The notes below the pieces were generated by a model. That model was given only the letters and a program-made list of their open reading frames with translations. It had not been told where the DNA came from and did not search any database. From Macrostomum lignano (Eukaryota): 64,000 nucleotides of DNA. The translations under genes and the position numbers were made by a program. Of the stretch, positions 25,753 to 61,609 are shown piece by piece; position 1 is the stretch's first letter; every line of letters begins with the position of its first letter. The stretch lies in contig NIVC01000028.1 in assembly GCA_002269645.1 (NCBI GenBank), forward strand, positions 310,001-374,000. The letters are read 5' to 3'.

Positions 25753-26723
25753 CTAAACTTTCCGAGCTCTTTCTGGATCGAAGCTAACAAGGCGTGAAAG
25801 CTGGTCGACTTTCTGCGGCACAACGTGAAACAGGCCGTCCTTTATCCGAACAGGGTTTTTCTGCAAGTGGCCGCTGACCTTGGTCATGATGGTAATTAGG
25901 TCGAGCTCACGAAAGTACTTCTCGATGAACTCGCAAGCAGTCTGCACGTACCGCGAACCCGAGTCGATGTTTCTAAAGGCGGCTGAGCCTTCAGTGGTGG
26001 CGTAGCAGAGCAGAAAGTCGCCCTCTGGAGGACGGATTGCGGAGTTGAACACCGGAGCGGGTGCCTCGTCCGTTTGCTCACGAGATTTGGCAGCATCAAC
26101 TCGGTCGCGACGGCTTCCGCGACAGGCCTGGATGAAGAACACCTTCGGCTTTCCTTCAAGGCTGCGGCAGACAGAACTCTGTGATGCGATGGTAGTGGCG
26201 GTGGAGTCTTCGGTCTTAGAAACTAAGTACAGTTCAGTCAAGACTTGTAAATGCGAGAAACATGTCAGTATCACCTTTTGGTACAACATTATACATTTCT
26301 ATTTAAGGGATTTTTATATCTCTCTTCTTGCTTGTACGAGCGAATCTATAGATAATTAGGCTCACCTTGAACTTTCCTGTCAGCTTTCGAACTTTGTAGG
26401 GAAAACCGTCCCTACCGTAGATGCAGTCGTGGCTGCCGTGCGCCATCAAGAAGCAGACAAAGCTGCCGTGCTTGGCAAGGTCCGGTAAGATTTTTATCTC
26501 ATTAAGAAAATTATCTACCTGCTCAACGGTGAGATCATTTTTTATCCTGACGATGAAGCGCAGACTCTCGAATACCCGCTTCACTCGGTCAACATCACGA
26601 TCCGAACCTTGACGCTCTTCAAAATTGAAGGTGATGTCACTTCCCCTGTCGTACTCGCTGATGTTGATGATCAGGCAGAAGCCTTGCGGATTCGTCACTG
26701 GATAGAAATCTTCCTCTTCGTGC
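25753..26723 (-). CDS. Caspase catalytic domain (p20 + p10) exons
   Basis: FYPVTNPQGFCLIIN, RQGSDRD, FLMAHG (catalytic His), GKPKVFFIQACRG (catalytic Cys), DFLLCYATTEG..AFRN..GSRYV. Confidence 0.96.
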
Positions 26724-29700
26724 CTGGAATGCAGAAGACGCTGAATATGGTTTCATACTTTAGAGCACACGAATAATTATGTATTAAGCACCTTGACGGT
26801 TGATGTCGAATTGCTTTGACAGAGATGGCTCCTTCGGGAGTTCTGAAAAGTTTTTATTTGATTCGACAGAAAAAAATATGCATTGCATTATCCAATCAGT
26901 GATAATTTCTGAGCACTTCCAACGTGATGCATAAATTTAACCTTGACTCACGGATCTGCTTCATCATCACTCGGTTCCTCGTCATAAGCATGGTCCGTGA
27001 CAACTCTTCGTCTGGAATGGTTAAAATGTGCTGTAGCTGTATGTGCTGTAGCTGTGTGTGCCGTAGCTGTGTGTGCCGTAGCTGTGTGCGCTGTAGCTGT
27101 GTGCTGAAGGAACTTTTAACAGAGTCAACTATTGCAATATTTGACGGACGATAACAATTACACGAGGTCTCAAAAGCCAAAATCAGTCGATTTATATATT
27201 TTAATATATATATACAGTATTAGGCATGCACAAAGAACGTGCGTACATTACAATCGATAAATTAAAAGGCAACTTGAGCGTGCCCCACCCCCCAGCGCAG
27301 GCCAACCCCAAAACCGATATTGTTACTCACAATATAAAGTCATCACATCCCTTCGCACTTAAGTATGAAAGTAGGATTAACAAAAAATAACATTATTAGT
27401 TATAATAAAAAATATTGAAGCGAGCAACACAACTAAGGTACTAAAATCTAGTTCATAAACAACAGTTACTTCAGCTGTAAGTCAGTCGCTCAGGTGCAGC
27501 GCACTTCCTCATCGAACGGCGAAGCTGCGGCATGGCGTCGGGCTCCACCGCAGCCTCAGCAGCAACGCCGTCAGGGAAAACTTCGGGTGCGTTCTTCGGC
27601 ACTGCATCGCACTGCGGCACCGCTGCCGCAAGTACCGCCGGCTTGGTCGGAAGCTGACTGACCGCGGCCGGCTTGCGCACCTGGTCCACGTGCCTGTGTG
27701 CGTCTCTGTCGTCATCGAACCGGCACGTGAAGTCGGCCGCACCAGAACTGTCCGTGACTGTCGCCGGCCTCCAGCGTCCGTCACTCGCGAAGTTTCGCGC
27801 CAGCACCGAGTCGCCGACATTAATGCGGCAGTCGTGCGCGTGGGCATCGTGCTGCTCCTTCTGCAGTGCCTGCTGTACGGCCACCCGAGCGGGCAGGTCA
27901 GGGCGGACTCGGTCGAGCAACGATTTCAGCCTCCGTCCCATCAGCAGCTCGCAGGGAGCCCTCCCGGTAGTCGCATGCGGCGTGACTCGGTACGTCAGGA
28001 GGAACCGGGAGACTCGCTCCTCCAGAGAGCCGCTTCGCTGCTTGGCCAGCGCGCGCTTCAGAGTCTGAACTGCTCGCTCTGCTTGGCCGTTGGACGCCGG
28101 GTGGTACGGAGCCGTGCGCACGTGCCGGATGCCGTTCTTGCTCAGGAATGTCTCCATCTCCGCGCTGACCAGGTTCGGACCGTTGTCGGAAACAATCACG
28201 ACCGTGAGTTGCAAAGCTCGATCGCAGCTTCTCGATTGTCGCAGTCGACGACGTCGAAGGCATCACATGCACGTCTATCCACTTGGAGTGGGCGTCAACG
28301 ACAACGAGCAACATCCGGCCCTGGACTGGCCCGGCGTAGTCAATGTGCAGGCGCAACCACGGCTTGTCCGGCCTAGCCCACGGCTGCAGTGGAAACGGAC
28401 CTGGTGACTTCTGCATCTCCTGGCATTCGGTGCACGCGGCGACCAGCCGCTCGATCGCCTCGTCCAGCTTAGGCCACCAGAAAACGCTTCGAGCCAGCGC
28501 CTTCATTCTCGTGGCGCCCTGGTGCCCCTGGTGCAGGCTGTGCAGCAGCGCCTCTCGACCGGCCTCGGTAACTACGACTCGGCAGCCCCAGAGCAGACAA
28601 CCGTCTTGGGTGCTTAGCTGGTCGGCTCGCGTGCAGTATGGCTGCAGCTCAGGCGGCGGCCGCTCTGGCCAGCAGCCGGTCTCAGTGAAGCGCAGAACTC
28701 GGGACAAGTCCGGGTCTGTCCGAGTCCACGTCCGGATGTGCCGAGCCGTCACCGGTCCCTCGTCCAGGAAGTCCATGAGTAGGACGACTTCAGCTGGAGT
28801 TGGCGCTTCCTTCGGCTTCTCCGGCAGCGGCAGCCGACTCAGCGCATCGGCTCGAAGCAGCGACTTGCCCGCTCGATGGACCATTGAGTACTGGTAGTCG
28901 GCCAGGAGCAGCGCCCACCGCTGGATTCTGCCAGAAGCCAGTGCTTGTATCGGTTTCGACTGGTGCAGCAGCCCGAGCAGCGGCTTGTGGTTGCTCACCA
29001 GCTCGAAGTCTCGCCCGAACAGGTACATGTGAAATTTCTTAACTCCGTAGATGACCGCGAGCGCCTCCTTCTCGAGTTGTGAGTATCGGGTCTCTGCTTC
29101 ATTTAGCGTGCGAGAGGCAAAGGCGATCGTTCTGTCGACTCCGTCGATCCGGTGGCTGATGACGGCACCGATGCCGTAAGGCGAGGCGTCGCACTCGAGC
29201 ACCAGCGGTTTCTGACGGTCGATATGCGCGAGCACCGGTGCCTGGCTGAGTAGCGACTTGCACCTGCGGAACGCCTCGTCCTGCACAGCGTCCCATCGCC
29301 AGGGGGCGCCCTTGTTCAGCAGCTGGTTCAGCGGCGCCAGTTTGGTTGACAGATTGGGCATGAACTTGCCGTAATAATTTACCAGCCCGAGGAAGCTGCG
29401 CAGCTGCGTCTGGTCGCGGGGTGGTGACGCATCCTGGATCGCCCGCACCTTGTCCTGGAGAGGGTGCAGCCCTTCGGCGTCGATTCGGCGGTGCCTGAAG
29501 CTGATGCTCTGCTGCATAAAACTGCACTTGCTCAGGCCGCACCGGAGGCCGCTCTGCTGCAGTCGCCGAAGGACCTGCTCTAGCGTCTTCAGGTGGCTGT
29601 CATCATCCACACCGGTAACCAGCAGGTCGTCAACAAAGCAGGTGACGTGGGGAATACCCTGCAGAAGGCAGTCCATCAGGCTCTGGAAAATGCCGACAGC

Positions 29701-32700
29701 GGGAGCAACTCCAAACGGCAGTCTCGTGTACCGCAGCAGCCCCTTGCTGGTATTGATGGTGCAGAGTTCTTGCGAGGCCTCGTCCAGAGGCAGCTTGCGA
29801 CAAGACAAGCTTGGTGAATTTCTTTCCGCCGGCCAGTTTTGCGAAGAGCTCCTCGATCCTCGGCACCGGGTACGTGTCAGGCTCTACGTCGAGGTTCACC
29901 GTTTGTTTAAAATCAGCGCATATGCGGACCGAGCCGTCTGTCTTTAAAACGGGTACGATCGGAGACGCGTAGTCCGAGCTGCTCACCGGCTTCAGCACTC
30001 CCTGTTCGATCTCTTTTCGAGTTGCGCCTCGACCTTCTCCTTTAGCGCAAGCGGGAAGTTTTTGGCCTTGAAGAACCTCGGCCGCGCTGAGGCTTTCAGC
30101 TGCAGCCGAACTGCGGGCCCCGTGTACCGACCGAGGCCCGGCTCGAAGACTTCGGCGTACTTGTCCAGCAGGCTCTTGAGCCCTGGTTGCCCTGACGGAT
30201 GCTGTTGCACCTCCTTGATGTTTCGCCAGTCCAGTGGAAGTTCGGCCAGCCAGTCGCGGCCAATCAGATTTGAGCCCGCACCGTCGGTCACGAGCAGCGG
30301 AAGCACCTTGATGGCGACCTCGGTCGGCGCGCGAACTCGAAGTTGGCCGAGTACGGGCACCAGCTCTCCGGAGTACGTCCGCAGCTGCATGTTGACTTGT
30401 TCGAGTCTGGGACGCCCGCGCAGTACTTCGTTGTAGGTCTTCGCAGAGATGAGTGACACAGACGCCCCAGTATCGACCTCCATGCAGACTGGCGTGCCGT
30501 CGATGTCGATGGTGGTCTTGATCGGCGGAATCTTGCCGCCTACGGCAGCCGCCATCACTTGCAGCGAGAAAGCCTCCTCCACTGCCTCCTCCGCCTGCAG
30601 CTCTTGGACGGTCGAGTCGACGCGACGATTCGAAGCTCGCTGCAGCCCCGCTGATCTCTCGTCCCGCTGAGCAGGCGGCGCTGCCTTGCACGCAGCAGCG
30701 ATGTGTCCGGTTTTCGAGCATGCGTAACACCTACTATTAATGAACGGGCACTTTGCAGCCAGGTGGCGCTGGGACCGGCATCCATAGCAACGCTTCGCTG
30801 GCGGCCCGCTGGCCGCCTCCCGCTGGGCAGAATGGTGAAGAGCGTGCACCGTGTCAGAGCCGGCGCCTTTAGCCACCAGCAGGTTGCCTTGAGCGGCCGA
30901 CTCGTGCGCCTGCGCCAGCGACAGCGCCGTATCCGGCGAGAACTCCTTCTCTGTGAAGAGCCTCCGCTGAATGGAATCATCACTGATCCCCAGGACCAGC
31001 CGGTCCCTGAGCATGCTGCTGAGCCCAACGCCGAAATTGAAGTCCCGAGCTAGCTTACACAGCTCAGCCAGGAACTCTGCCACCGACTCGCCTGCCTGAC
31101 GGCTTCTGCTGTAGAACCTGAATCGCCGTACAATCTCTGGTGGGGTTGGATCAAAATGCTCCTTCAGCTTAGCACAGATGGCGTCGTAGGTCGTGTCCTT
31201 CGGCAGAGCTGGTGACAGCAGGTTTGATATCAGCTGGTAGGTGTCCCTGCCACAAATGCTCAGCAGCACGGCTCGTCTCTTTTTATTGCTGATTTCATTT
31301 GCTGTGAAAAACTGTTCTAAGCGCTCCTGGTACTGCTGCCAGGTCTCAGTGCCCTCTTCAAAGGGTCCTATTGAGCCTATCAGACTCATTCCTCGTCGCC
31401 ACTTTAACAGAGTCAACTATTGCAATATTTGGCGGACGATAACAATTACACGAGGGCTCAAAATCCAAAATCAGTCGATTTATATATTTTAACAAGCTGT
31501 TAAAACCCGCAGATTTTGAACCCGGGGAACTCCATTCCCTGGAATTATTTTTGCATGTATTCTAAAATCTGAGGTCAAACTCAAACAAAACTTGTTAATA
31601 GTTAGGAAAGACTTAAACATAAAATAGAGTATTCGTGTAAAATTAAGATTTGAAGCCAGCATTGATATTGTCAGGCAAACTCTGGCCTCTACCTCTGTCT
31701 CTCCCTATGTCCCTTGGATCCTTTGAAACTTCTATCTTCTCTCCTTTTCTCTCCTTTCTCCTTTCTCCTCTTTTATCTCTTCTCATTTCTCTCTGCTCTC
31801 TACTCCCTCTTTCCTCTCCCCTTTTTTCACTCCTTACTCTACGCTCTCTCAACACTTCCCAGTTTCAATGCATGTCTGTCCACTCTCTTCTCATCTCTTC
31901 TATTGTCTCTTCCTTCACCTCTCTTCTCGTCTTTGCTCTCTTATCTCCCCTTTCTCTTCTTTTATCTTCTCTCTCTTATCTTTTCTCATTTCTCTATGCA
32001 CTCTCTCCTCTCATCTCTCTGCTCTCTCATCTCTCTGCTCTCTCATCTCTCTGCTCTCTCCTGTCCCATCTCCTTTCTCTCTAATCTCTCCCCTTTTTCT
32101 CACCTCCCTCCTTTTCACCAATTTCCCCTGTCCTCTCGATTCTCTCCCCTCCCCTCCTCTCTCCTCACTCACTTCTCATCTCTCCCTTGTTTCCACCTCT
32201 TATCTCTTATTTCTTATTTCTCCTTTCTCTCTACTCTCCCATCTCTTGTCTGTTCAGTGTTCACTCTCGTTTCTGCTATCTCATCTCCCTTCTCTAATCT
32301 TTCATCTTTACTCTCATATGTTCTCTCACCTCTCTCCTATTGTACTCTTCTCTTTTCCCTTTTCTGACTCAGGACTCTCTTTCCTTTCTTCTTTCTTCTC
32401 GTCTCTTCTCTTCCATCTTCTATACTCTCTCCCTCTCTTGTTTTCTCTCTTCTCTCTACACTCTCCTCTCCTCTCATATATTGTCTGTTTACTCTCATCT
32501 TTGCTCACTCATTCCCCTCTCTCTTCTGTCATCTCTACTCCCCTTCTCTCCTCTTTTCCTCTCTCCTTGTACTCTTCTCTTTTTCCTCTTCTGACTCTAC
32601 TCTTTTCTACTCCTCTCTTCTCTTCCCTCTTGTCCCCTCTATTCTCTTCTCTCGTCTCTCTGCACTGCAAGTTTCAACGCTGAGTTGCCACTATTCAAGG

Positions 32701-32724
32701 AGGAGATGTCGAAATGACAGACAC

Positions 32725-32759
<35 letters not shown>

Positions 32760-35700
32760 ACACGTCAACTTTAGTATATACAGAGACGAGTGGAACTCCT
32801 CCTTCGGAGAAAGGGGAACAACTCCCATCACCGGAATTCCATTCCCTGAAATATCCATCAACTGAAATTCCCTGTATTGAACCCTATCTTCCAAATCGTC
32901 TCTAAATTCTTTACAAAACCTTTCAAAGACCATAGCTCAAAGACTCTCACGTCTCTCATATCTCATATCTCCTCTTCTCTTCGCTATTATCGTGACTCTC
33001 TTCTCTGTCCTCTCTCTCATCTTATCTCTACCCCTACTCCCTTATTTATCTCTTCTCCCTCGTCTTTCGTCTGTAACCTCTCCTGTCACTTGTCTCCTCT
33101 CTTCTCTCATATCTCTCCTCTTCACCTCTGTCTCCTGTCTCCTCTCTTCTCTCTTATCTCTCCCTCTTCTCTCCTCTCTCAAATCTCATCTCTACTAACT
33201 TATCTATCGTCTCTCCTAACCCTCTGTCTCTTCTCTTTTCTCTCCTATCTGATCTCATATCTCATATGCGCTCTCACACTCTACTTTCTTATCTCCCATT
33301 TTTCTTCCCTCCCTTCCACTATCCCCTGTCTCTTCTCTTCTCTCTTCTCTATCCTCTCCATCCTTTCTTCTCTCCTCTCCTTTCTCCTTTCATCTTCTCC
33401 CCTCTCTTCTCTAATCTCTAATCTCTTCTCTCCTATGTTCTCACTTATCTCTTTTCTCATCGCATCTCTCCTCTCTCCTCTCCTCACTACTTTCCTCTCT
33501 TAACTCTCTCTTCTCCTCTCGCTTCTCTCTCCTCTCTCTTCTCTCATCTCTACTACCTTGTTTATATCTTCTCCCGGGTCTTTCGTCTCTACTCTCTCCT
33601 GTCTCTTTTCTCCTCTCTTCTCTCTTCCCTCATCTCTCATCCCTCATCCCCTCATCTTACTCTTTCTTTCTCCTCTACTCTCCCCTCTCTTCTCCCCTCT
33701 GTACGCTCTTATCCCTCATCTTTTCTCTCTTTTATCATCTCTTTTGTCTCCCTGTGTTATCTCATATCTCCCCTCTCATCTCCTCTCTCATCTTCTCTTC
33801 TCTCTCCCTCTTTGTTCCCGCCTTACTTCCCTCTTCTCTCCCCCTTGTCATGTCTAATTTCTCCACTCATTTCTACTCTGTTTTCTATCATCTCATCTCT
33901 CTTCTCTTTTCATTATTTTCTTTACTCTCTTCTCTGACTGATTGAAGATGCCAAATCCATCAAGATCCTCTCCGCGAAGCAGAAATCCTGTCGGTGCAAC
34001 TGAAAACCATCGAAATCCTCTCCGTGAAACTGGACTGAGACTAACAAAACTAGACTCAACAAAACTGGACTCAATCGAAATTTTCTCCGTCAAAAAGAAT
34101 AAATTATCAGGATTCATTGGTTAGGGCTATTGTTAGGGTTAGGGTTCGAGCTACACACAGCTGCGTGTCCAAATAAAAATTGAACCAATTGAATCAATTG
34201 ATTGCGCAACCGATTTCTCAGTCAGTCAGTATCCGTCTCAGTTAAAGTTAACAAAAAGATTGCGCAATCTAAATCAACCCTCCAGTACACAGAGGCCGAC
34301 CCCTTTTCAATACGCAGTGGCAGTTAGAAATTGAATCCCCAACTGTTGGGGGGGGTCGGTCGAACGCCCATTGAACCAAAAAATGAGTACAATCTTTGCA
34401 GAAAGCTAAAAGTATGAAATAGTTTTTGTGATGCTGTGCTTTTAGTTTTTATATTTAAAACAAACAATTTATATCCTCGAACTCAGCGTTGCAAGATCTT
34501 TTCAGCAGTATAAGTCTCTTCTCTGGAAGTTTAAAACTCGAAGAGCAGTTAGCGTTTGAAACTGTCTGATTTATAGCATTGAAGTATCGAGTGTACGTTC
34601 ACTGCCTGCTTGCAAGTTGATGCATTGAATTTCAATGTCCAAAAAATACACATGGCTGCCCATTGAGAGGCAGGAAAACTCCTGCTGAATTATCTATACA
34701 GTCAGCCAGTGAGCCAGGGTCCAAGTGTACACACGCAGCCATGAGAACGCTCCCACCCCCCACTGGAGAGAAATACACTACAGAGATAAGAAAAAGTGGT
34801 GGCGCAATCACTAAAAATTGATGCATTTTCAGCTCCGAGCAGAAAAAAGGGACAAATAAGACTATCAAAATTATTAAAATAGCCTATAGCCGACCTCGGA
34901 TAATTTCCAATCTTCCCATTTAAGTTTCAACGCTGAGTTGCCACTATTCAAGGAGGAGTTGTCGAAATGACACACAGACAGACAAACAGACAGACTTAAG
35001 TGTACCCCAACCCACAGAACTCACGGCAGTGCCAGAGGCTCGTCGAAGTAAATCTTTCCGTCGTACCTAAATAGGCAGTGCGGAGTCTGAAGTCAGGGGG
35101 TATTCCATTGAGAGACCATGCTCTATGCTTAATTTCTTCCTTTTGTTTAAATTAACTTCAAAACAATTTTTTTAAATTTGTTTTAAAATTTGTTTTAAAA
35201 TTTGTTTTAAATTCTTTGTTTTGTTGTAAAAATCTGTAATATTACCAAAAAAGCACAAAAAATTTAAATGTTAAACTTAAACTCAACTATCACAGCAAAC
35301 TGCTTGCTGGTGTCTCACAGCTCGCAGGCAGCTGAACATTAATATTCAACTGGCAATCTGCAGTCAAACTGCACTGCAAACTCCCTCAATGCAGCTCAGT
35401 CAGTGTCTGCTGCCCGTTTAAACTACAAAAATGTAAAAATGCCCACTCAGAGCAACTGCAGTCAGCTGCTCAATATTAAATCATAAATTACAGCATAATG
35501 TTTATCAATGATAAATCAAAGTCAGAGAGACATTCTCAGTCGCCATGGAAACTCACCCACGCAGCAGCTCAGCCAATTCGCTCTTTTCCTTCTGTGTGGC
35601 CAAATCCAGCGCAGTCCTGCCGTATTTGTTCTTCAGGCTCCAATCCGCCCCTGAGTCCAGCAGAACCCGACCGAATGCGGCGGCGGTGGCGGAGGGCGTA

Positions 35701-38700
35701 TTGATGGCTGCCAGCATGAGGGGCGTGAATTCACACTGACCCGTGGCATTGGCGGAGGCTCCGGCAGCCAGCAGAGCGGAGGCTGCGGCAGAATTGCCAG
35801 TCCTGGCTGCATGGTGCAGGCAACTTTCAGCCAATATAGTCGCACAGGTGGGGTCACCTAGCTGCACCAGCTGCTCCCACTGAGCCTCATCACCACACGA
35901 GCTGTTCTCAGCTGCCCACATCAACGCGGTGCGACCCCGAATGTCAGGCAGGTCGCAGTTGCCGCGGGTCGCCGCTCGCCGCAGCCCCGCCAAGTCGCCC
36001 GCCTCGGCCAGCCGCTCCAGTTTCTGTCGAACCGCCTCCTCCTGCAAAGGCGAGCGGGAAATTTGAGCACAGCTGCTCAGCTGCAGCCGCATCGGCACTG
36101 CAGATGCCGCTCACCTGGTCTGTCAGGCCGGAGATCTTGTCACCTTTGCTCACAACCAGCCGCATCTCCCTGAAACAACAAAAATGAGCAGCGAATTTGC
36201 AATTTTCTCAAATCCGACAACTAAGATCGCAAAAAAATTAATTCCAAGATGTATGAATTAATTTTCATGATAAATTCAGTAGACAGAAATGTTTTGTTTG
36301 AAGAACGCCAAGTCAATGAATTATGGTAGTTTGAAATTAAGCTATATTTTAGCGGCAGCGCGCTCCTAGGGTCTTGTGCTCCTAAATGAAAAGATTCAAA
36401 GCTTAGGAAACAAAGGAGAGTACCGTATCGCGTCGCATAAACCATAGACTATTTTCGAAGTAAAAGTCTATACTTTGCAGTAGTCATAGCAATACGCAAC
36501 ACCCCCACCGATGCTTATACAGTGCAGTTCAAAGTTACGCCTTAAGCAATTCAGTAATAAGTCAATCGTTCCGGAGGTCGCCTGACTCGTGTGCTCCTAC
36601 GGAACTCGAGCACACCGTGTTCCTTGTGCCTAGGCGACTGCATTGCATGGCGCATTGGACTTGTGGTAGCACTGTCTTGGCACGTAGTTGCATCAGTATC
36701 ACGAGGGGTGATCCCAGACTGCTTCGAATCATCAATCGGTAGTTCCTCTGTACGAGCAGTAGCATCGGACTGGTGCACTAGTCGTCCTTCTGCGTCTCGG
36801 AAAGTATTTGTACCAACTGTAGACTTCAGCTCAGAGGGGACCCGTTGCTCCTTGTGCTCCACACGCACGAAAACAGGAACTGGCTCTTGAACCGGCCTCG
36901 TCCTCTCTGTACAAATGGCTGATAGACGTGTTCGGGGCGACTGCTGAAACACCAGAAGTGCCGGAATTGATCCATTGCAGTGAGGAGTCGTATTCTGAAA
37001 CAGGCAGAATCCTGCTCAATGCCTTTCCAGCTCAGAAAGATTGGCACCAGCGTTTAACTTTCTTAAATAAAACTTCAGTTCTTCAATGACTCTCTCCACC
37101 TGACCGTTGGATTGATGATGTCCTCGGGGAGTAAGTGTGTGGTCGATGTAGTTCTCTCGCAGGAAAGTAACGAAATCTTCTGCCACAAAAGTTCCACCAT
37201 TGTCCGAAACCAGATTTTTCGGCAATCCGGTATACTTGAACGTTTTTCTCAGCGCACTGATGACAATGGATGCTTTCATTGACGGCACGGACTGTACATC
37301 TACCCATTTTGAAAATGCGTCAACCAGGACAAGGAAGCGTTGACTTTTGAAAGTAGCGATGTCAACGTGAACTCTCTCGAAGAAACTTTTTGTCTCCGGC
37401 CATGACGACAGATTTGCATTGCTTCTTTTCCTAGCATGTAGCTGGCATTGAACACAACGTTGAACGAATGCATTGATTTGAGCATCTATGTCGGGCCACC
37501 AGAAGTACTGTCTGGATAGACGTAGCATCCTCACGATGCCGGGGTGGTCCTCGTGAAGCATCTGAAGAATTTCGCTTCTCAGGCTAGAGGGTGGGACGAT
37601 GCGCAATCCTTTGAAAATCAATCCGTTTTGGAGTGTGTATTCCAACTTATTGCGTGAATATGGCAGCATAGCTGGTGGTGGATAAGCAGGCCAGCCGTCT
37701 TGAATGTACTTCTTGAGCATGTCCAACTTGTAATCTTTAGTTCGCACGATCCTCTGCAGTAGCTGTTCGGGGTTTCCGAAACCCTCCAGTGCATTGATTT
37801 CTATGAGGTTGATCTTCTGATCCGCTGAGTCCGACTGCAATGGAAGTCTAGACAAAGTGTCTGCAGCGTACATCGTTTCACCCTTGACGTACTTCACATT
37901 GTAATCGTAAGCTCTTAACAGTAATGCCCATCGCTGAATCCTTGCTGAAACTCGCTCGGAGACCTTGTTCGGATTAAATATGTACTGAAGCGGTCGGTGA
38001 TCAGAAATGATGGTAAATTTTCGACCCGCGAGGTACTGATAAAAGTATCTGGTCCCTTCGACGATCGCTAACGCCTCCCGCTCAATGTTAGCGTAGTTGC
38101 TCTCCGCTGGAGTCAGGACTCGGCTGCCTAGCCAGACAACCTGTCGTTGCATTGGATCATGAGCTAGAACGTACCCGAGGCCATCCTTAGAGGCGTCACA
38201 AATCAAGTACAACGGTTTCGTAATGTCGTATGCGGTTATCACACCGCCTGCAATAATGCTCTTCAGCTTGTCGAATGCCGCAGACTGCTCTCCATGCCAA
38301 CTCCAGTGAACTCCTTTCTTCAGCAGCTGATATAACGGTCGTGCAATCATTGAAAAGTTTTTGCAGAAGACGCCATAGTGTCGGAAGGTGCACAGAGCGC
38401 TACGCAGTTGGTCTTTGTCTTTTGGATATGGTAACCTCTTCCACGCCTCCATTCGTGCTGGGTCGGGGTGCATGCCTCCATCGCGCAAAATGAAGCCAAG
38501 AAATCGAACTTCTCTACGACATTCTTGAGACTTTCTCTGGTTAATCTTGAACCCGCAGTTTGCCAAACGATCCTTGACTTGACGAACCAGCTGCATGTGT
38601 TTTTCGACTGAATCCTCAGGAGTCCCAATACCAGGGGGGTAATGATGTCATTCTGATATGAGGCTGTAAATGGTTTTTTATTATAGGCAGGGGGGTTGTG

Positions 38701-45487: not shown

Positions 45488-45761
45488 TTCTCTGAGCACT
45501 CTCAATCAGCCCTTCTCTGAGCACTCTCAATCAGCCCTTCTCTGAGCACTCTCAATCAGCCCTTCTCTGAGCACTCTCAATCAGCCCTTCTCTGAGCACT
45601 CTCAATCAGCCCTTCTCTGAGCACTCTCAATCAGCCCTTCTCTGAGCACTCTCAATCAGCCCTTCTCTGAGCACTCTCAATCAGCCCTTCTCTGAGCACT
45701 CTCAATCAGCCCTTCTCTGAGCACTCTCAATCAGCCCTTCTCTGAGCACTCTCAATCAGCC
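45488..45761. repeat. 25-bp minisatellite (TTCTCTGAGCACTCTCAATCAGCCC), ~11 near-perfect copies
   Basis: Period 25 read directly. Confidence 0.98.
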
Positions 45762-47505: not shown

Positions 47506-50500
47506 TCATTTCCGTGCACCAAAAAACGAGCTCAGGAATCGCGGTTTCAGCTTCCCACCCGCCAGGTACTCGTGCCCCATCAGCTCCAGTGCGGATCTTC
47601 TCTTCCTGCGGTCCTTGGCGGTGCAGCGGCTGTAGAAATCCCTCAGCTCTGCGGACCGGCCGTCCGGCAGGGCGGGGGCGCCCCTCCTGTCGATCAGCTG
47701 GGCCATTTCTAGCAGGCTTTTGGTGTTCGCGAACGGCCTTGAGCCGGACGCCATCTGGAAGACGGAGCAGCCGAACGCCCAGATGTCCGACTCTCTGCTG
47801 TACTGCACGCTGTCCGACTCTCCCGCTCCGAGCAGCTCTGGCGCCATGAAGTTCAGAGTGCCCTTTGGTTTCGAAGTGGAGGCTGAGATGTGGCTGACTG
47901 AATGCTCCAGCTTAATTGACAGGCCGAAGTCGATCAGCTTGATTCGCGTCTTGTCAGCACAAACAATTATGTTGGAGCAGTTGATGTCTCTGTGGATGAC
48001 GGGCGGCTGCTGGCTGTGCAGGTAGAGCAGCGCGCGGCAGATCTGCGAGCGGTCGGTCAGTGAGCAGTCATCATTCATGGGAACATGGAGCAGGAGCATC
48101 AAGGATGCACAATGCTCACCTGCTCGCTGAAGTCTCGGGTCGTCAGCTCGTCCAGCGGCTTGTTGTCGATAAACCTCTCCAAGCTTCGGCCGTCCAGCAG
48201 CTCCATGAACACAACGACTGTGGCGGGCTTCGGCTGAGCGATGTGCAAGAACCTGACGATGTTGGGATGCCGCAGTCGGCACAGGTTTCTCTCGCTCTCG
48301 ACAGCTCTGTGGATCTCTGAGCTTACATCGGTTTGGTCATCACCGAGCTGCACAGGCAGTCTGAGAGTCTTGGCAGCGCACGTGACGCCCGTGTCAGTTC
48401 GAACTTCGTGGACTTCGCCGAAGCCTCCGCGGCCGATGAGACGAACGGCGTCCCAGCGCTCCAGGAATGGGGGGCCTTCGGGTCTGAGGGGATGCGAATT
48501 GAGGCAATGAGGGATAATATGCATGCTGTAGCTGTGTGCTGTAGCTGTGTGCTGTAGCTGTGTGCTGTAGCTGTGTGCTGTAGCTGTGTGCTGTAGCTGT
48601 GTGCTGTAGCTGTGTGTGCTGTAGCTGTGTGTGCTGTAGCTGTGTGCTGTAGCTGTGTGTGCTGTAGTTGTGTGCTGTAGCTGTGTGCTGTAGCTGTGTG
48701 TGCTGTAGTTGTGTGCTGTAGCTGCGTGCTGTAGCTGTGTGTGTTGTAGCTGTGTGCTGTAGCTGTGTGTACAGTAGCTGTGTGTGCTGTAGCTGTGTTT
48801 GCTGTAGCTGTGTGTGCAGTAGCTGTGTGTGCTGTAGCTGTGTGTGCTGTAGCTGTGTGTGCTATAGCTGTGTGCTGTAGCTGCGTGCTTTTCTGTGTGT
48901 GGTGTAGCTGTCTGTACTGAATGAACTCACGGCAGTGCGAGAGGCTCGTCGAAATAAATTTTCCTGTCGTACCTGAAAAAGCAGTGCGGAGTCTGATTTC
49001 TGGCGGAATTCTGGTGAGAGCCCATCATGTTCTGTGCTAACTTACATTCTAACATTCTATTCTACCTAATTATTTTGCTTTATTTATATTTGTTACAAAA
49101 TAGATTTTTAAACATTTTCTGCAATTTAATATGGTTAAATTGAACTTAAATGTCACAGCAAAATGGTTGCTGGTGTCTCACAGCTCGCAGGCAGCTGAGC
49201 ATTAATATTCAACTGGCAATCTGCAGTCAACTGCACTGCAAACTCCTTCACTGCAGCTCAGTCAGTCCCTGCTGCCGATTTAAACTACAAAAATGTAAAA
49301 ATGCTCACTCAGAGCAACTACAGTCAGCTGCTCAATATTCAATCATAAATTACAGCATAATGTTTATCAATGATAAATCAAAGTCAGAGAGACATTCTCA
49401 GTCGCCATGGAAACTCACCCACGCAGCAGCTCAGCCAGTTCGCTTATTCTGTACTCTGTGGCCAAATCCAGCGCAGTCCTGCCGTCTTCGTCCTTCAGGC
49501 TCCAATCCGCCTCTGAGTCCAGCAGAACCCGACCGACTGCGGCGGCGGTGGCAGGGGGCGCAAAGGCTGCCAGGATGAGGGGCGTTGATTTAAAGTCATT
49601 CCTCGCATTGGCGGAGGCTCCGGAAGCCAGCAGAGCGGAGGCTGCGGCAGAATTGCCAGCGGTGGCTGCATGGTGCAGGCAACAAAAAGCCCATCTATTC
49701 GCACAGGTGGGGTCACCCAGCTGCAGCAGCTGCACCCACAGAGCCTCATCACTGCACGAGCTGTTCTGAGCTGCCCGCATCAACGCGGTGCGACCCCAGT
49801 CGTCAGGCAGGTCGCAGCTGCCGCGGGTCGCCGCTCGCCGCAGCCCCGCCAAGTCGCCCGCCTCGGCCAGCCGCTGCAGTTCCTGTCGATCCGCCTCCTC
49901 CTGCAAAGGCGAGCGGGAAATTTGAGCACAGCTGCTCAGCTGCAGCCGCATCGGCACCGCAGATGCCTCTCACCTGGGCTGTCAGGCCGGAGATCCTGCC
50001 ATCCACAACCAGCCGCATCTCACTGCAACAGTAAAAATGAGCAGCGAATTTGCAATTCTCCTAAATCCAATACCTACAATCGCAAAAATAATTATTTCAT
50101 GATAAGTTTTGTAAACAGAAATTCTAATTCTAATTCTAATTCTAATCTGAGCTGCTCGCAGATGGAGTTTCCGAGAGGACTGCAGCAGCTCTGCAACAAT
50201 CAGCATTGGCGAGAGCGCATCCGACTTCTCACATGCAGCTCATTTTCCATTTCTGCAGCATGAGTTTCCTTCCATCTCACAATGTCTCACAAAGCACTCA
50301 CGCACAGCCTCCCAGTTCTCCATCTGCAGCTCCACCACACACTCTCACTGCACACCGAGGCCCTTCAGCTTCCATTCTCGACTGAGATCAACCGGCACCC
50401 CATTGGCTGTGAGGCAGCCAGCCAATCACAGCTCTCGCCCATCAAGCAGTCAGCCAGAGACAAGCTCAGCTGACTGGCTCTGATTGGCTGGCCTGAGACT

Positions 50501-51348
50501 GCAGCTCTGGTCACCCCAGCCGAATGCTGCAAAACTTGATGGACACAGCAGCGAACTGCTCACTCACCGCTCGATGTAGTTGGCCAGCTCTGAGTGGCCG
50601 CTGAGCCTCGCCAGGTCCGACGCCGTCCGACCCTCGCGATCCTTCAGTCCGAGCAGGTGCGACCTCTTTGAGCTTCCGTGCTCCTCGCACTCATTGAACC
50701 TTCCCTGCCTGAGCAGGTGCAGCAGGTGCTTGGCGCATTTCCAGCTTCCAGTCCGCGCCGCCTCCATCAGCGGAGTGGCGCCGTTGTCGTTCCGCAGCCA
50801 CTTCGCATCGAACGACAGCAGCGTCAGCAGCCGCAAGTGGTCCCGTCGGGCTGCCAGGTGCGCAGCCGTGTCGCCGTTCGCGTCAGCCGCCTTGGGGTTC
50901 GCACCCAGCTCAAATAAGTACAAGATGCACTTTTCAGTGTGCACGGGAGTCTCAGGAGCGTCGGCCACCTGCATGAGGACGGTCCGACGAGCTGCATCAG
51001 CGCTGGTGACCAGCTGGCGCGTTGCCAGCCGCCGCACCTCGCCGAATTCACCTCGGATGACGTCGTGGGCGAGAGTCTGGAGATCGGCTGGTGAGTCTCC
51101 GACGCTTGGCCGGTTGCTGGGGTCCGGCTGAGTGAGTTCCTGCAACTGCAATTGAGGCACCCAAGCTGCCCATTCAAACATGTGAGTGAGTCCCTGCAAC
51201 TGCAATTGAGGCACCCAAGCTGCACATTCAAACATGTGAGTGAGTCCATGCAACTGCAATTGAGCCTATAAATATTCTGTCTCAGTTTTCTCACTTTAAC
51301 TTTACTTACTATTTCGTCAATAGATGGTGATCTCCGTCGCTCTGCCAT
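47506..51348 (-). CDS. Ankyrin-repeat Ser/Thr kinase (MAP3K/STE11-like domain), copy A, 7 exons, ~673 aa
   Basis: Exons 51310-51348, 50568-51076, 49974-50022, 49419-49900, 48931-48972, 48120-48483, 47506-48042; phases join (2022 nt). Kinase motifs GRGGFGEV, AAK, HPNIVRF, HRDINCSN, DFG, GTLNFMAPE, SDIWAFG. An extra 3' exon cannot be excluded. Confidence 0.87.
48523..48915. repeat. (GTAGCTGTGTGCT)n 13/15-bp minisatellite in the pre-kinase intron
   Basis: Direct reading. Confidence 0.98.
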
Positions 51349-52127: not shown

Positions 52128-52628
52128 TCAAGCGCCTCTCTCAACCCCCAGCTCTTTCAACAGTCTTCCCAATTCATTGTTTGGAGCACACAAAATAAAC
52201 CCTGCTCCCGTGCGTCCGCCCTCTCTCCCTGTGCACCCGCCCTCTCTCCCCGTGCACCCACCCTCGGCGCCGACCCCCAACCCCAACTTTGTCTTACCAA
52301 AAATAACCGCCTTGACTAATTTCCTAGCAATCGACTCACGAAATCCGCTTGAAATCCCCATATTGTCGAGTCTCCTGAGGATTTCTTTGTCCCAGCGATT
52401 CTTCTCCTCAGGAAAATCTCTATATTTAACATCGTGCCACATGCAGACAGAGTCTAGCTCGTTCACAGGCTCATGCCCAGGATTTGGATTATTGTTTTTA
52501 TCTAACTGTATTTCAAATGGATTCAAAGGCCCACAATATTTGTACCCGGGAAGTGTCCAGCCTTTGTTTGGATGAGGAAGCTTTTCTATCAGTCCATGTG
52601 AATCTAACTTACCACCAGAGTGTTGCAT
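52128..52628 (-). CDS. Parvovirus VP1-type phospholipase A2 domain protein
   Basis: WTLPGYKYCGPLN (Ca-binding loop) and NELDSVCMWHDVKY (catalytic HD..Y); ATG at 52628. Confidence 0.85.
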   Translation of the reverse strand: MQHSGGKLDSHGLIEKLPHPNKGWTLPGYKYCGPLNPFEIQLDKNNNPNPGHEPVNELDSVCMWHDVKYRDFPEEKNRWDKEILRRLDNMGISSGFRESIARKLVKAVIFGKTKLGLGVGAEGGCTGREGGCTGREGGRTGAGFILCAPNNELGRLLKELGVERGA

Positions 52629-52658
52629 TATTTTATTTAAAATTTTCTTTTTAAAAAA

Positions 52659-53468
52659 ATGACAGATCAGAAACTTAAAAAACTCTACTACAGCGACAAA
52701 GGATTCTTTGTAGGCAAAAATGCCGTTAGTAAACTCATGGAGCTGAGTAAGGAACCAAAAGCTACAGTAGAAAAATGGCTCTCTAAGCAGGCTGTCTACC
52801 AAGTCTATTTCCCACCAGTAAAATTTGAAAGGCCCCATTTCAGTATTTATAAACCTAATGAGGCGCACCAAGCAGATCTTCTGTTTCTCCCCAATGACTC
52901 AGGCTACAAGTATGCTCTTACAATTATAGACATTGCTTCCAGATATAAGGAAGCTCGCCCACTCAAGACGAAGAAGTCAGAGGTCGTTGCCAGCGCACTG
53001 CAAGAGATCTATGAAACCTCTCCTCTAACCTATCCAGAAATCTTTATGACGGACCCTGGTAAGGAATTCATGGGTGCAGTGAAATCCCTTATGGAAAAGA
53101 AAAACACAGAGATTCGCTATGGCAGAAAAAACTTGCACAGAGACCAGGCTTTTGTGGAAAGATTCAATCTAACTCTAGCCAAGAGGCTATTCAATAAGCA
53201 GACAGCTGAGGAGCTGAAACTAAAAAGTGGTCAGTACTATTCAAAATATTTACTATTTAAACACACTAATATTAAATTCATGCTCACAATCATCACGATC
53301 GGGGCAGCCCTCTCCTGCCTTAATTGTTATACCTTTGTCTCTTGCAATCTTTTGCAATTCCAGCTGGTGGGCTCTATCATTCCCAGCTTTAACAGCAGTT
53401 GCTACACCTCCAGCTACACCACCTGCGGCACTTACAGCGCCTGCAATGATCGGAATAAGAGCTGCTAA
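52659..53468 (+). CDS. Polinton-type retroviral-like (rve) integrase, C-terminus probably truncated by deletion
   Basis: HQADLL, LTIIDIASRY, MTDPGKEF, QAFVERFNLTL: intact D-D-E. Similarity appears to fade after about residue 190. Confidence 0.88.
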   Translation: MTDQKLKKLYYSDKGFFVGKNAVSKLMELSKEPKATVEKWLSKQAVYQVYFPPVKFERPHFSIYKPNEAHQADLLFLPNDSGYKYALTIIDIASRYKEARPLKTKKSEVVASALQEIYETSPLTYPEIFMTDPGKEFMGAVKSLMEKKNTEIRYGRKNLHRDQAFVERFNLTLAKRLFNKQTAEELKLKSGQYYSKYLLFKHTNIKFMLTIITIGAALSCLNCYTFVSCNLLQFQLVGSIIPSFNSSCYTSSYTTCGTYSACNDRNKSC

Positions 53469-57809: not shown

Positions 57810-60800
57810 TCATTTCCGTGCACCAAAAAACGAGCTCAGGAATCGCGGTTTCAGCTTCCCACCCGCCAGGTACTCGTGCCCCATCAGCTCCAGTGCGGAT
57901 CTTCTCTTCCTGCGGTCCTTGGCGGTGCAGCGGCTGTAGAAATCCCTCAGCTCTGCGGACCGGCCGTCCGGCAGGGCGGGGGCGCCCCGCTTGTCGATCA
58001 GCTGGGCCATTTCTAGCAGGCGTTTGGTGTTCGCGAACGGCCTTGAGCCGGACGCCATCTGGAAGACGGAGCAGCCGAACGCCCAGATGTCCGACTCTCT
58101 GCTGTACTGCACGCTGTCCGACTCTCCCGCTCCGAGCAGCTCTGGCGCCATGAAGTTCAGAGTGCCTTTGGGTGACTGAGTGGAGGCTGACACGTGGCTG
58201 ACTGACTGCTCCAGCTTGATTGACAGGCCGAAGTCGATCAGCTTGATTCGCGTCTTGTCAGCACAAACAATTATGTTGGAGCAGTTGATGTCTCTGTGGA
58301 TGACGGGCGGCTGCTGGCTGTGCAGGTAGAGCAGCGCGCGGCAGATCTGCGAGCGGTCGGTCAGTGAGCAGTCATCATTCATGGGAACATGGAGCAGGAG
58401 CATCAAGGATGCACAATGCTCACCTGCTCGCTGAATTCTCGGGTCGTCAGCTCGTCCAGCGGCTTGTTGTCGATAAACCTCTCCAAGCTTCGGCCGTCCA
58501 GCAGCTCCATGAACACAACGACTGTGGCGGGCTTCGGCTGAGCGATGTGCAAGAACCTGACGATGTTGGGATGCCGCAGTCGGCACAGGTTTCTCTCGCT
58601 CTCGACAGCTCTGTGGATCTCTGAGCTTACATCGGTTTGGTCATCACCGAGCTGCACAGGCAGTCTGAGAGTCTTGGCAGCGCACGTGACGCCTGTGTCA
58701 GTTCGAACTTCGTGGACTTCGCCGAAGCCTCCGCGGCCGATGAGACGAACGGCGTCCCAGCGCTTCAGGAATGGGGGTCTGAGGGGATGCGAATTGAGGC
58801 AATGAGGGATAATATGCATGCTGTAGCTGTGTGTGCTGTAGCTGTGTGCTGTAGCTGTGTGCTGTAGCTGTGTGTGCTGTAGCTGTGTGCTGTAGCTGTG
58901 TGTGCAGTAGCTGTGTGCTGTAGCTGTGTGCTGTAGCTGTGTGTGCTGTAGCTGTGTGCTGTAACTGTGTGTGCTGTAGCTGTGTGCTGTAACTGTGTGT
59001 GCTGTAGCTTTGTGTGCTGTAGCTGTGTGTGCTGTAGCTGGGTGTGCTGTAGCTGTGTGCTGTAGCTGTGTGTTGTAGCTGTGTGCTGTAGCTGTGTGTG
59101 CTGTAGCTGTGTGCTGTAGCTGGGTGTGCTGTAGCTGTGTGTGCTGTAGCTGTGTGCTGTAGCTGTGTGTGCTGTAACTGTGTGCTGAAGGAACTCACGG
59201 CAGTGCCAGAGGCTCGTCGAAGTAAATCTTGCCGTCGTACCTAAATGGGCAGTGCGAAATCTGAAGTCAGTGTGAATTCTTTTGACAGCCCATGCTCTGT
59301 GCTTCATTCTTTCCATTTCTTTAAATTAACCATATAATAATATTTTTAATAGTTTTTATTCTATTGTAAAACGCTGTAATATTACCAGAAAAGCACAAAG
59401 TAATTCAGATGGCAAAATGCTTGCTGGTGTCTCACAGCTCGCAGGCAGCTGAACATTAACATTCAACTGGCAATCTGCAGTCAAACTGCACTGCAAACTC
59501 CCTCAATGCAGCTCAGTCAGTGTCTGCTGCCCATTTAAACTAAAAAAATGTAAAAATGCCCACTCAGAGCAACTGCAGTCAGCTGCTCAATATTCAATCA
59601 TAAATTACAGCATAATGTTTATCAATGATAAATCAAAGTCAGAGAGACATTTTCAGTCGCCATGGAAACTCACCCACGCAGCAGCTCAGCCAGTTCGCTC
59701 TTTCCCTCCTCTGTGGCCAAATCCAGCGCAGTCCTGCCGTCTCTGTTCTTCGGTCTCCAATCCGCCCCTGAGTCCAGCAGACCCCGACCGACTGCGGCGG
59801 CAGTGACGGGTGGCGCATGGGCTGCCACCATGAGGGGCGTGGATTTAGACAGACCTGCCCCTGCATTGGCGGAGGCTCCGGCAGCCAGCAGAGCGGAGGC
59901 TGCGGCAGAATTGCCAGCCCCGGCTGCACGGTGCAGGCAACTTTCACCAATTAAATTCGCACAGGTGGGGTCACCCAGCTGCACCAGCTGCTCCCACAGA
60001 GCCTCATTACCGCACGATCTGTTCTGAGCTGCCCACATCAACGCGGTGAAACCAAAACTGTCAGGCAGGTCGCAGCTGCCGCGGGTCGCCGCTCGCCGCA
60101 GCCCCGCCAAGTCGCCCGCCTCGGCCAGCCGCCGCAGTTCCTGTCGATCCCGCTCCTCCTGCAAAGGCGAGCGGGAAATTTGAGCACAGCTGCTCAGCTG
60201 CAGCCGCATCGGCACCGCAGATGCCGCTCACCTGGTCTTTCAGGCCGAAGACCATGCCATATTTATCCATATCCAGCCGCATCTCCCTGCAACAGAAAAA
60301 TTGAGAACTGAATTTGCAATTTTCTCAAATCCGCAACTACAATCACCAAAAGAAATTTATTTATATTTTGACAGAATCTTAGTAAACAAAAATCCCCAAT
60401 TATCTGAGCAGCTCGCAGATGAAGTTTCCAAGAGGACTGCAGCAGCTCTGCAACATCAGCATTGGCGAGAGCGCATCCGACTTCTCACACGCAGCTCATT
60501 TTCCATTTCTGCAGCATGAGTTTCCTTCCATCTCACAATGTCTCACAAAGCACTCACGCACAGCCTCCCAGTTCTCCATCTGCAGCTCAACCCACACACT
60601 CTCACTGCACACCGAGGCCCTACAGCTTCCATTCTCGACTGAGATCAACCGGCACCCCATTGGCTGTGAGGCAGCCAGCCAATCACAGCTCTCGCCCATC
60701 AAGCAGAGTCAGACAGAGACAAGCTCAGCTGACTGGCTCTGATTGGCTGGCCTGAGAGTGCAGCTCTGGCCACCCCAGCCGAATGCTGCAAAACTTGATG

Positions 60801-61609
60801 GACACAGCAGCGAACTGCTCACTCACCGCTCGATGTAGCTGGCCAGCTCTGAGTGGCCGCTGAGCCTCGCCAGGTCCGACGCCGTCCGACCCTCGCGATC
60901 CTTTAGTCTGAGCAGCCGCGACCTCTTCGAGTTTTCGTGCTTCCCGTACGCATTTAATCTCCACTTTCTTAGCAGGTGCAGCAGGTGCTTGGCGCATTTC
61001 CAGCTTCCAGTCCGCGCCGCCTCCATCAGCGGAGTGGCGCCGTTTTCGTTCCGCAGCCACTTCGCATCGAACGACAGCAGCGTCAGCAGCCGCAGGTGGT
61101 CCCGTCGGGCTGCCAGGTGCGCAGCCGTGTCGCCGTTCGCGTCAGCGGCCTTGGGGTTCGCACCCAGCTCAAATAAGTACAAGATGCACTTTTCAGTTTG
61201 CACGGGAGTCTCAGGAGCGTCGGCCACCTGCATGAGGACGGTCCGACGAGCTGCATCAGCGCTAGTGACCAGCTGGCGCGTTGCCAGCCGCCGCACCTGG
61301 TCGAAGTCACCTCGGATGACGTCGTGGGCGAGAGTCTGGAGATCGGCTGGTAAGTCTCTGACGCTTGCCCGGTTGCTGGGGTCCGGCTGAGTGAGTTCCT
61401 GCAACTGCAATTGAGGCAACCAAGCTGTACATTCAGACATGTGAGTGAGTTCCTGCAACTGCAATTGAGGCAACCAAGCTGTACATTCAGACATGTGAGT
61501 GAGTTCCTGCAACTGCAATTGAGCCTATAAATATTCTATGTCTCAGTTTTCTAACTTCAACTTTACTTACTATTTCGTCAATAGATGGTGATCTCCGTCG
61601 CTCTGCCAT
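57810..61609 (-). CDS. Ankyrin-repeat Ser/Thr kinase (MAP3K/STE11-like domain), copy B, 7 exons, ~673 aa
   Basis: Exons 61571-61609, 60827-61335, 60232-60286, 59674-60158, 59199-59240, 58424-58778, 57810-58346; phases join (2022 nt). Same kinase motifs as copy A. Confidence 0.87.
58817..59185. repeat. (GTAGCTGTGTGCT)n 13/15-bp minisatellite in the pre-kinase intron
   Basis: Direct reading. Confidence 0.98.

Follow-up and report, generated by a model that had tools for sequence, protein, structure and literature searches.

Tandem genes of Macrostomum lignano join one ankyrin core to a caspase or to a MAP3K-like kinase at a shared minisatellite intron

The window analyzed here, a 64,000-nucleotide stretch of contig NIVC01000028.1 from the free-living flatworm Macrostomum lignano, carries three tandem genes on its minus strand in which one ankyrin (ANK) core is joined either to a caspase (gene A, 42140-25753) or to a MAP3K-like kinase (gene B, 51348-47506, and gene C, 61609-57810). 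The rebuilt gene models confirm the original prediction that both effectors follow the same core, and they place each junction at the same phase-2 intron. The best explanation, and a probable one, is that these genes are three tandem members of a large family, that gene A is an ANK-caspase gene with later insertions, that the two architectures are linked at a minisatellite intron, and that the second ankyrin block may act in recognition.

The gene models were prepared by reading the minus strand at each claimed junction and then assembling the coding sequences. All of the exons named in the original prediction are present on that strand, and the junctions 35025/27011, 26952/26723, 48931/48483, and 59199/58778 match the rebuilt models exactly. 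Every intron of the three genes is bounded by GT-AG, every junction is in frame as had been claimed, and the open frames of A, B, and C extend for 655, 673, and 673 codons with 0 internal stops. Gene A has eight exons (33, 509, 55, 485, 42, 60, 358, and 426 nt). Exon 1 (42108-42140, MGNEASKLEDK) is specific to this gene and looks like an N-myristoylation signal (Gly2, Ser6). Exon 2 (41513-42021, 509 bp, phase 2 at its end) encodes ankyrin block 1 and shares 94% DNA identity with gene C. The 55-bp linker exon 3 (36115-36169) is followed by exon 4 (35557-36041, 485 bp), which encodes the hypervariable ankyrin block 2 and is a 100% match to part of the public model P0002. Exon 5 (35025-35066, 42 bp, phase 2 at both ends) encodes the hinge, YDGKIYFDEPLALP, and is found at the equivalent place in the paralogue loci L001, L002, and L004. 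Exon 6 (26952-27011, 60 bp, phase 2 at both ends) encodes an acidic linker, RRVVTDHAYDEEPSDDEADP, and has homologues in P0001 (RKIVTDH...) and P0003 (RKVFTDH...). The caspase is encoded by exon 7 (26366-26723), which contains the first part of p20 including the catalytic His (MAHG), and exon 8 (25753-26178), which contains the end of p20 (QACRG), the intersubunit loop, p10, and the stop codon. The start of this last exon at 26178, between KFK and SSVCRSLEGKPK, matches that of the paralogues P0121, P0122, and P0001.

Genes B and C have seven exons apiece. In gene B, these lie at 51310-51348, 50568-51076, 49974-50022 (49 bp), 49419-49900 (482 bp), 48931-48972, 48120-48483, and 47506-48042. In gene C, they lie at 61571-61609, 60827-61335, 60232-60286 (55 bp), 59674-60158 (485 bp), 59199-59240, 58424-58778, and 57810-58346. 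Transcript-derived paralogue models point to an earlier start for the first ankyrin exon of B and C, which probably extends another 69 nt in the 5' direction (to 51145 and 61404, respectively), with an in-frame gain of LQELTQPDPSNR...DLQ. This stretch has been lost from gene A, which has its own first exon. Just 5' of ankyrin block 1, a 54-bp unit is repeated 2.5 times in both C (61388-61523) and B (51129-51264). Each copy contains an acceptor-like TTGCAGTTGCAG, and multiple in-frame alternative acceptors are therefore available upstream of block 1.

The products of these genes combine Pfam Ank repeats with Peptidase_C14 in gene A (PF00656, 1e-38) and with Pkinase in gene C (5e-50). The nearest solved structures to the caspase of gene A are caspase-3, followed by caspase-8. 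In the alignment with caspase-3 (6e-37), the MAHG, QACRG, ERQGSD (Arg), and AFRN (Arg) motifs are kept, such that the His-Cys dyad and the Arg, Gln, and Arg residues of the S1 pocket are all intact. Based on these residues, gene A is predicted to encode a catalytically complete, Asp-specific caspase. The kinase has MAP3K2 (5e-28) and MAP3K5 (2e-26) as its nearest solved structures, with STE20-type kinases, WNK1, and PAK1 close behind, and its core motifs are complete (GRGGFG, AAK, HRDINCSN, DFG, and APE). The enzyme of B and C is thus predicted to be a catalytically complete STE/MAP3K-like kinase, with the MAP3K likeness taken from the best matches only. Gene A was modeled with AlphaFold2 (27 relatives in the alignment; mean predicted local distance difference test, pLDDT, of 84). 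Residues 12-365 form one continuous, confident ankyrin module that includes the residues of the 55-bp linker exon, which are structured (pLDDT >90). The caspase is folded. Disorder is seen in the acidic 60-bp exon (residues 374-398), a linker modeled for gene A only, and in the intersubunit loop (537-566). Conserved Asp motifs lie within the disordered parts, VVTD/H in the linker and DRVD/A and EQTD/E in the intersubunit loop, and could be processing sites.

In gene A, two gaps of 5 kb and 8 kb interrupt this plan, and each is read as a later retrotransposon insertion that left all splice sites intact. Between block 1 and the linker exon lies TE2 (36289-40898, minus strand and sense to A), a long terminal repeat (LTR) retrotransposon with Pfam protease, reverse transcriptase, RNase H, and integrase domains in that order. 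Its 213-bp LTRs are 98.6% identical, its insertion site is clean, and the element is not there in the corresponding intron of L001, the compact locus of the P0001 gene in GenBank assembly Mlig_3_7. In the hinge-to-effector intron, a 7.9-kb block (27115-35016, likewise minus strand and sense to A) has been inserted 8 bases in. This block consists of an LTR-type gag-pol element (27115-31492) and ~3.5 kb that include CT-rich low-complexity DNA (~31650-33900). It is flanked on both sides by a 5-bp target-site duplication, AGTTC, and the ancestral intron start GTGAGTTCCTTCAG has been cut into GTGAGTTC on one side and AGTTCCTTCAG on the other. The terminal repeats of both large insertions are 97-99% identical. 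The Gypsy-order LTR element that had been placed between the ankyrin exons and a caspase 8 kb away is real.

The connection across these insertions is provided by L001, in which ankyrin block 1, the linker, ankyrin block 2, the 42-bp hinge, a 410-bp intron, the RKIVTD exon, and the caspase follow one another. Gene A is collinear with this locus in both exons and intron stretches (42029-41111, 36290-35422, 35099-35017, and 27114-25655), and, because of this collinear homology, the distant caspase exons belong with the ankyrin exons. By this comparison, gene A is an ordinary ANK-caspase gene, the introns of which have been stretched from a few hundred bases to 5 and 8 kb. Genes of Mlig_3_7 were annotated from RNA-seq transcript assemblies, and transcripts that overlapped repeats were discarded (PMC5730564). 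Since the GenBank models derive from RNA-seq assemblies, the ankyrin-to-caspase splice is supported by transcripts in the paralogues. The presence of both domains on one polypeptide is seen in the in-frame eight-exon model of A and in the transcript-derived models P0001, P0005, P0022, and P0031; for the mRNA of A itself, it is a prediction.

It is very improbable that the ankyrin and caspase exons of A are instead two genes, namely an ankyrin-only gene and a short-prodomain caspase that starts in the intron or the LTR. A caspase-only model does exist (P0121, which is 5'-partial and reads into the intronic repeat), and spliced-leader trans-splicing, which is widespread in M. lignano (PMC8629364), could in principle supply a start. 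However, there is no in-frame ATG ahead of the caspase before residue 113, just 5' of the catalytic His (FLM/AHG), and the frame that leads into the caspase is closed off at the edge of the LTR. An ATG supplied by the spliced leader would, at either candidate acceptor, be in the wrong frame. Compact paralogues, moreover, unite the same exons in one transcript-derived model. A stand-alone caspase, whether begun in the intron or LTR or by spliced-leader trans-splicing, is rejected on the basis of the reading frame, and the single ANK-caspase gene of the original prediction, for which an independent caspase start had been named as one refuting outcome, is strongly favored.

A more serious concern is that gene A is no longer a working ANK-caspase gene: the sense-oriented retrotransposons would stop or mis-splice its transcript, leaving at most an ankyrin-only protein and the caspase exons as a silent relic. 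Several observations weigh in this direction and against a functional gene A. Both insertions are young, sense-oriented, and contain AATAAA signals, which makes premature termination plausible. The full-length protein is found in no public annotation, and gene A is absent from the transcript-based annotation. It is represented in public data by two faulty models only, P0002, an ab initio model that joins retrotransposon reading frames, the second ankyrin exon, and the caspase, and P0121, the 5'-partial caspase that runs into the intronic repeat. Reading through the donor after block 2 or after the hinge leads to an immediate stop (...ELLRG-stop and ...PLALP-stop), with the donors at 35554-35558 and 35022-35026, which are the same in B and C, reading G/GTGA or CC/GTGA. 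The transcript-derived ANK-only paralogues P0006 and P0009 terminate exactly after the hinge exon. These endpoints suggest that intron retention may yield a built-in short ANK-only isoform. Finally, the closest ANK-caspase paralogues look catalytically dead: P0001 (L001) has QAGRG instead of QACRG, and the P0003 gene (L002) has an in-frame stop within p20 in its first caspase exon (..FIVKVK-stop-DLTAEQ), which accounts for the shortened 498-residue P0003 model. In contrast, the eight exons of A are open, its splice sites are canonical, and its His/Cys dyad and Asp-pocket Arg, Gln, and Arg residues are intact. In addition, the ratio of nonsynonymous to synonymous substitution rates (dN/dS) of its caspase is 0.4-0.5 relative to paralogues, although, for caspase exon 1, no reliance can be placed on the value obtained with the P0003 gene, whose in-frame stop there upsets the codon alignment. 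The absence of A from the annotation is explained by the removal of repeat-overlapping transcripts by the pipeline. An intact frame alone is no proof of function, because the insertions are recent, and loss of the working gene, while unlikely on this balance, keeps appreciable weight. For annotation, the case means that retrotransposon-filled introns led two public pipelines to split or mis-fuse one gene.

The point at which the caspase and kinase architectures diverge is marked by a minisatellite. A 13-15-bp minisatellite with the core CAGCTACAGCA takes up nearly all of the post-hinge intron in B, C, L001, and L002. It fills the hinge-to-kinase intron of gene B (48524-48911) and gene C (58819-59187) and makes up the entire 410-bp intron of L001. 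In gene A, a 96-bp remnant (27019-27114, unit ~CACACAGCTACAGCA) lies directly 5' of the acceptor of the 60-bp exon. Five crown-group genes, with both effector types among them, thus carry the minisatellite. In contrast, it is absent from the deep paralogues L003 and L004, in which the exon layout is retained. A comparison of kinase gene C with caspase locus L001 places the breakpoint: the two are homologous from upstream of block 1 through all introns (61418-58813), and the homology ends at the 3' edge of the minisatellite, ~35 bases before the kinase acceptor, with unrelated sequence beyond. Every intron that borders the 42-bp or the 60-bp exon is phase 2, among them the intron that leads into the first enzyme exon. 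Both exons are therefore symmetrical, and their skipping or exchange would leave the frame unbroken. No kinase relic was found in the long intron of A, and no caspase relic was found downstream of B or C within the window. From these features, we infer that the ANK-caspase and ANK-kinase genes are connected by recombination at the phase-2 minisatellite intron. The locus may serve as an unusually clean case of exon shuffling, with symmetrical phase-2 exons, a shared breakpoint minisatellite, and introns that can still be aligned on one side, features that allow the event to be traced in the DNA itself.

Gene A itself bears traces of such an exchange. Homology to the ANK-caspase paralogue P0003 is seen at both of its ends: the 5' region (42333-42124) corresponds to that around the first exon of P0003 (MGSAASS...), and the last caspase exon, together with the 3' flank, matches the P0003 gene at 88-91%. 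In the ankyrin exons, however, dS between A and B or C is 0.06-0.09, as compared to 0.11 and 0.155 between A and the P0003 gene and 0.11 and 0.27 between A and the P0001 gene. In the caspase, dS reaches 0.18 against P0003 and 0.34-0.37 against P0001. Ankyrin block 1 has a low dS (0.07-0.14) in all comparisons, which suggests that it undergoes concerted evolution. Judged from these matches and distances, gene A is a mosaic: caspase-type sequence makes up its first exon, promoter region, caspase exons, and 3' flank, and its ankyrin exons are nearest to those of the neighboring kinase genes. This composition fits recombination among tandem relatives, by gene conversion or an effector swap, with the minisatellite intron as its 3' limit. 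In a distance-based bootstrap tree of 39 ankyrin cores, the caspase-linked and kinase-linked members are interleaved, and a well-supported crown clade mixes both. A weakness of this account is that the tree lacks resolution inside the crown clade, so that the direction and number of swaps are not fixed.

The two architectures could also have arisen with no intron swap, if an ANK-kinase-caspase ancestor had lost either its kinase or its caspase exons. Genes with all three domains do occur in several copies and branch deep in the ankyrin-core tree. P0162 (BOX15_Mlig018903g1-3) is represented by three gene copies and has an intact QACRG, and P0043 (L003, 10001-16269) has a degenerate caspase-like exon ~190 bp after its last kinase exon, in which the His and Cys are lost. 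The kinase of P0043 is 49-59% identical to those of B and C. The caspase of P0162, by contrast, is only 35% identical to that of A, and neither gene A nor the sequence after B or C retains the relic that such a loss might have left. The crown-group homology between the two architectures also has an abrupt limit, the 3' edge of a shared minisatellite that is absent from the deep and triple-domain genes. Moreover, the ankyrin dS of A is only 0.07 to its kinase neighbors, as compared to 0.18-0.37 for its caspase relative to other caspases. Because the ankyrin dS is far below the caspase dS, a recent exchange is required whatever the ancient history, and differential loss is considered an improbable substitute for recombination at the minisatellite intron.

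The three window genes share one plan: a 350-residue two-block ankyrin module, the conserved 14-residue hinge exon, a linker, and a C-terminal enzyme. About fifty public M. lignano models (49) contain this ankyrin core, after which some have a caspase, some a kinase, some both enzymes, and others no enzyme. The best matches to the window genes are all from M. lignano, as is every family-type match recovered. In addition to the triple-domain genes, the public models include Ras-ANK-kinase (P0037), SH3-ANK-caspase (P0290), and Ras/Roc-caspase (P0266 and P0281, with a caspase 44% identical to that of A) architectures, in agreement with the lineage-specific modular family that had been proposed. 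Tandem copies are found at other family loci, and the kinase of P0014 is frameshifted. The picture is one of a family under fast birth-and-death evolution with modular ends.

The ankyrin part was originally described as variable, and its variability proves to be structured, being located in block 2 at canonical binding positions. Among 22 crown-group paralogues, block 1 is nearly invariant, whereas block 2 varies at positions -4, -2, -1, +1, +9, and +10 relative to repeat position 4. These are the positions that are randomized in designed ankyrin binders. The mean entropy of block 2 is 1.81 bits at the canonical binding positions and 0.58 bits in the framework (p = 5e-8); no such contrast is seen in block 1 of the same paralogues. 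Comparison of A, B, and C reveals the same bias, with the proportion of nonsynonymous differences (pN) in block 2 being 0.37-0.40 for surface codons and 0.08-0.10 for framework codons, and that of synonymous differences (pS) being 0.05 for the framework. Over the whole of block 2, dN among these genes is 0.13-0.16 and dS is 0.06-0.08, for a ratio of ~2, as compared to 0.6-0.8 in block 1 and 0.6 in the kinase. The excess of dN over dS has a one-sided Fisher p of 0.03-0.04 per pair, with the pairs being non-independent. This pattern, with its focus on the canonical positions in each of four successive repeats, points to a candidate binding face.

The variability of block 2 may alternatively have no ligand behind it and reflect relaxed constraint and patchy gene conversion in a pseudogene-rich birth-and-death family, with a role in cell turnover, germline, or stress signaling. 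Disabled paralogues are indeed common (the QAGRG caspase, the premature stop, and the frameshifted P0014 kinase), and the dN/dS above 1, which rests on three sequences, drops to ~1 when more distant paralogues are used (~0.8-1.3 for P0001 and P0003), a point that counts against diversifying selection. However, relaxed constraint would be expected to spread changes evenly and not to raise dN above dS, whereas the observed variation falls on the canonical binding positions in four repeats in a row, with conservation both of the framework residues in that exon and of block 1 throughout. Ligand-free variability is thus regarded as rather unlikely.

Among known proteins, the closest likeness is to the ANK caspases, a flatworm-specific clade that is sister to the DED caspases, was stated to occur in parasites only, and has been considered as a potential parasitic adaptation (Horkan et al. 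2024, Genome Biol Evol, PMC11463336). These proteins, which that paper credits to Lee et al. 2014 as first noticed in Schistosoma, share with gene A an N-terminal ankyrin pro-domain in place of CARD or DED. In contrast to the published parasite proteins, the M. lignano family occurs in a free-living, early-branching flatworm, is greatly expanded, and also uses its core with a kinase. All of the members recovered come from this free-living species, and either the published restriction to parasites is too narrow or the M. lignano ANK-caspase is an independent fusion. No parasite ANK caspase was recovered among the top 150 matches, mostly giant ankyrin proteins, of a profile search with seven ANK-caspases, which did yield the triple-domain, Ras-caspase, and mollusc STAND proteins. 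Word-indexed searches, run both with the caspase domain by itself and with an alignment of caspase domains, recovered Macrostomum as the only flatworm. The best matches of the gene A caspase are caspase-8-like, in a comparison that contained no parasite ANK caspase. For M. lignano, PMC11463336 describes only a caspase with a kinase-like pro-domain, sister to the ANK-caspase clade, and does so without mention of the ankyrin core or of ANK-only-caspase or ANK-kinase members. This protein is most likely of the P0162/P0043 type, which carries the two-block ankyrin core, a related kinase, and a caspase on one chain, whereas the window genes carry one enzyme each. The ankyrin-caspase architecture that had been singled out as unusual is therefore present but not new. 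No description was found in the literature of ANK-caspases in M. lignano, their expansion, sibling ANK-kinases, the breakpoint intron, or structured hypervariability, and searches with the paralogue gene identifiers and for the ankyrin-kinase family found nothing. The ANK-kinase siblings, the precise position of the swap, and the rapidly evolving binding surface appear to be new.

An N-terminal ankyrin domain and a C-terminal kinase are also combined in ILK and TNNI3K, and RIPK4/ANKK1 likewise contain ankyrin and kinase domains; all belong to the TKL group. Genes B and C have the same domain order as ILK and TNNI3K. Their kinase, in contrast, is nearest to the STE-group MAP3K2 and MAP3K5, and no sign of orthology is seen. 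Like the NLR/STAND receptors, the flatworm family is expanded, varied in architecture, and pairs a repeat domain that shows signs of diversifying selection with alternative effectors (caspase, kinase, or kinase and caspase, with extra Ras or SH3 N-termini in some members). Unlike them, it has a short, N-terminal ankyrin module and no nucleoside triphosphatase (NTPase) switch: a Pfam scan (E <= 0.01) detected no NTPase domain in A or C or in nine further family members, and the tenth protein of that scan contains Ras/Roc and caspase only. The likeness to NLR and HET receptors that had been drawn therefore fails on their defining central domain. Among the proteins scanned, nSTAND3 was seen only in mollusc proteins, of which Haliotis rufescens P0149 combines a caspase, nSTAND3, and 24 ankyrin repeats and Batillaria attramentaria P0172 combines nSTAND3, ankyrin, ZU5, and a caspase (15-24 ankyrin repeats in the two). 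These were considered as relatives and rejected. Their caspases are 27-28% identical to that of A, lower than generic caspase-3 and caspase-8, and the resemblance is therefore convergent.

A working model of how the family might act can be assembled from these observations. Ankyrin block 2 would be a protein-recognition surface under diversifying selection, and ligand binding would cluster the protein. In caspase members, for which the MGxxxS start may provide membrane anchoring, clustering would lead to proximity activation of a long-prodomain caspase and to self-processing at VVTD/H, DRVD/A, and EQTD/E. In kinase members, the same recognition event would give a MAP3K-type phosphorylation output. 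Triggering of the output by a sensor, and any immune role of the family, are putative. Taken as a whole, the model of block-2 recognition, clustering, and caspase or MAP3K output is tentative and somewhat less likely than not. A bolder version, to which we assign a small chance, describes a receptor repertoire without an NTPase, in which a hypervariable ankyrin surface would read non-self or danger ligands and intron-level exon shuffling would connect it to caspase death or MAP3K signaling.

Several other features of the window were recorded. The spacer between B and A is largely made up of three tandem-repeat arrays (43369-44228, 24-bp units; 44776-45093, 18-bp units; and 45487-45763, 25-bp units). 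Between B and C lies an open reading frame (ORF) like phospholipase A2 of the parvovirus-VP1 type (PF08398, 1e-12; 52128-52871, minus strand), which overlaps head-to-head with an rve integrase ORF (52659-53468, plus strand); together, 52128-53468 may be a Polinton-like or other integrase-bearing element. On the plus strand, kinesin-motor-like exons with P-loop SSGKTFT and DLAGSER motifs (13630-18811) are interrupted by a ~2.7-kb tandem-repeat tract (14.5-17.2 kb), which produces long artifactual ORFs on each strand. The remaining features are a WSC-domain ORF at the window edge (164-664, minus strand), a trinucleotide microsatellite (946-1351) that reads as poly-Ser, poly-Thr, poly-Leu, or poly-Val, a mariner-type transposase (8091-9299, minus strand), and an ORF with a likeness, by eye, to a THAP zinc finger (10341-10799, minus strand).

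For the biology of the family, the nearly invariant block 1 and a block 2 that varies at binding positions lead to the hypothesis that a single constant partner and a range of variable ligands would be coupled to death or kinase signaling. Function is testable in M. lignano, for which transgenesis and RNA-seq resources exist. An expanded family in a free-living, early-branching flatworm would place the origin of ANK-caspases at the base of the phylum or would reveal a second, independent fusion. If the NTPase-less repertoire were to prove true, these genes would be an animal counterpart, built from different parts, of the sensor-effector repertoires of plants and fungi, and ANK caspases would be an ancestral flatworm immune or death system and not an adaptation to parasitism.

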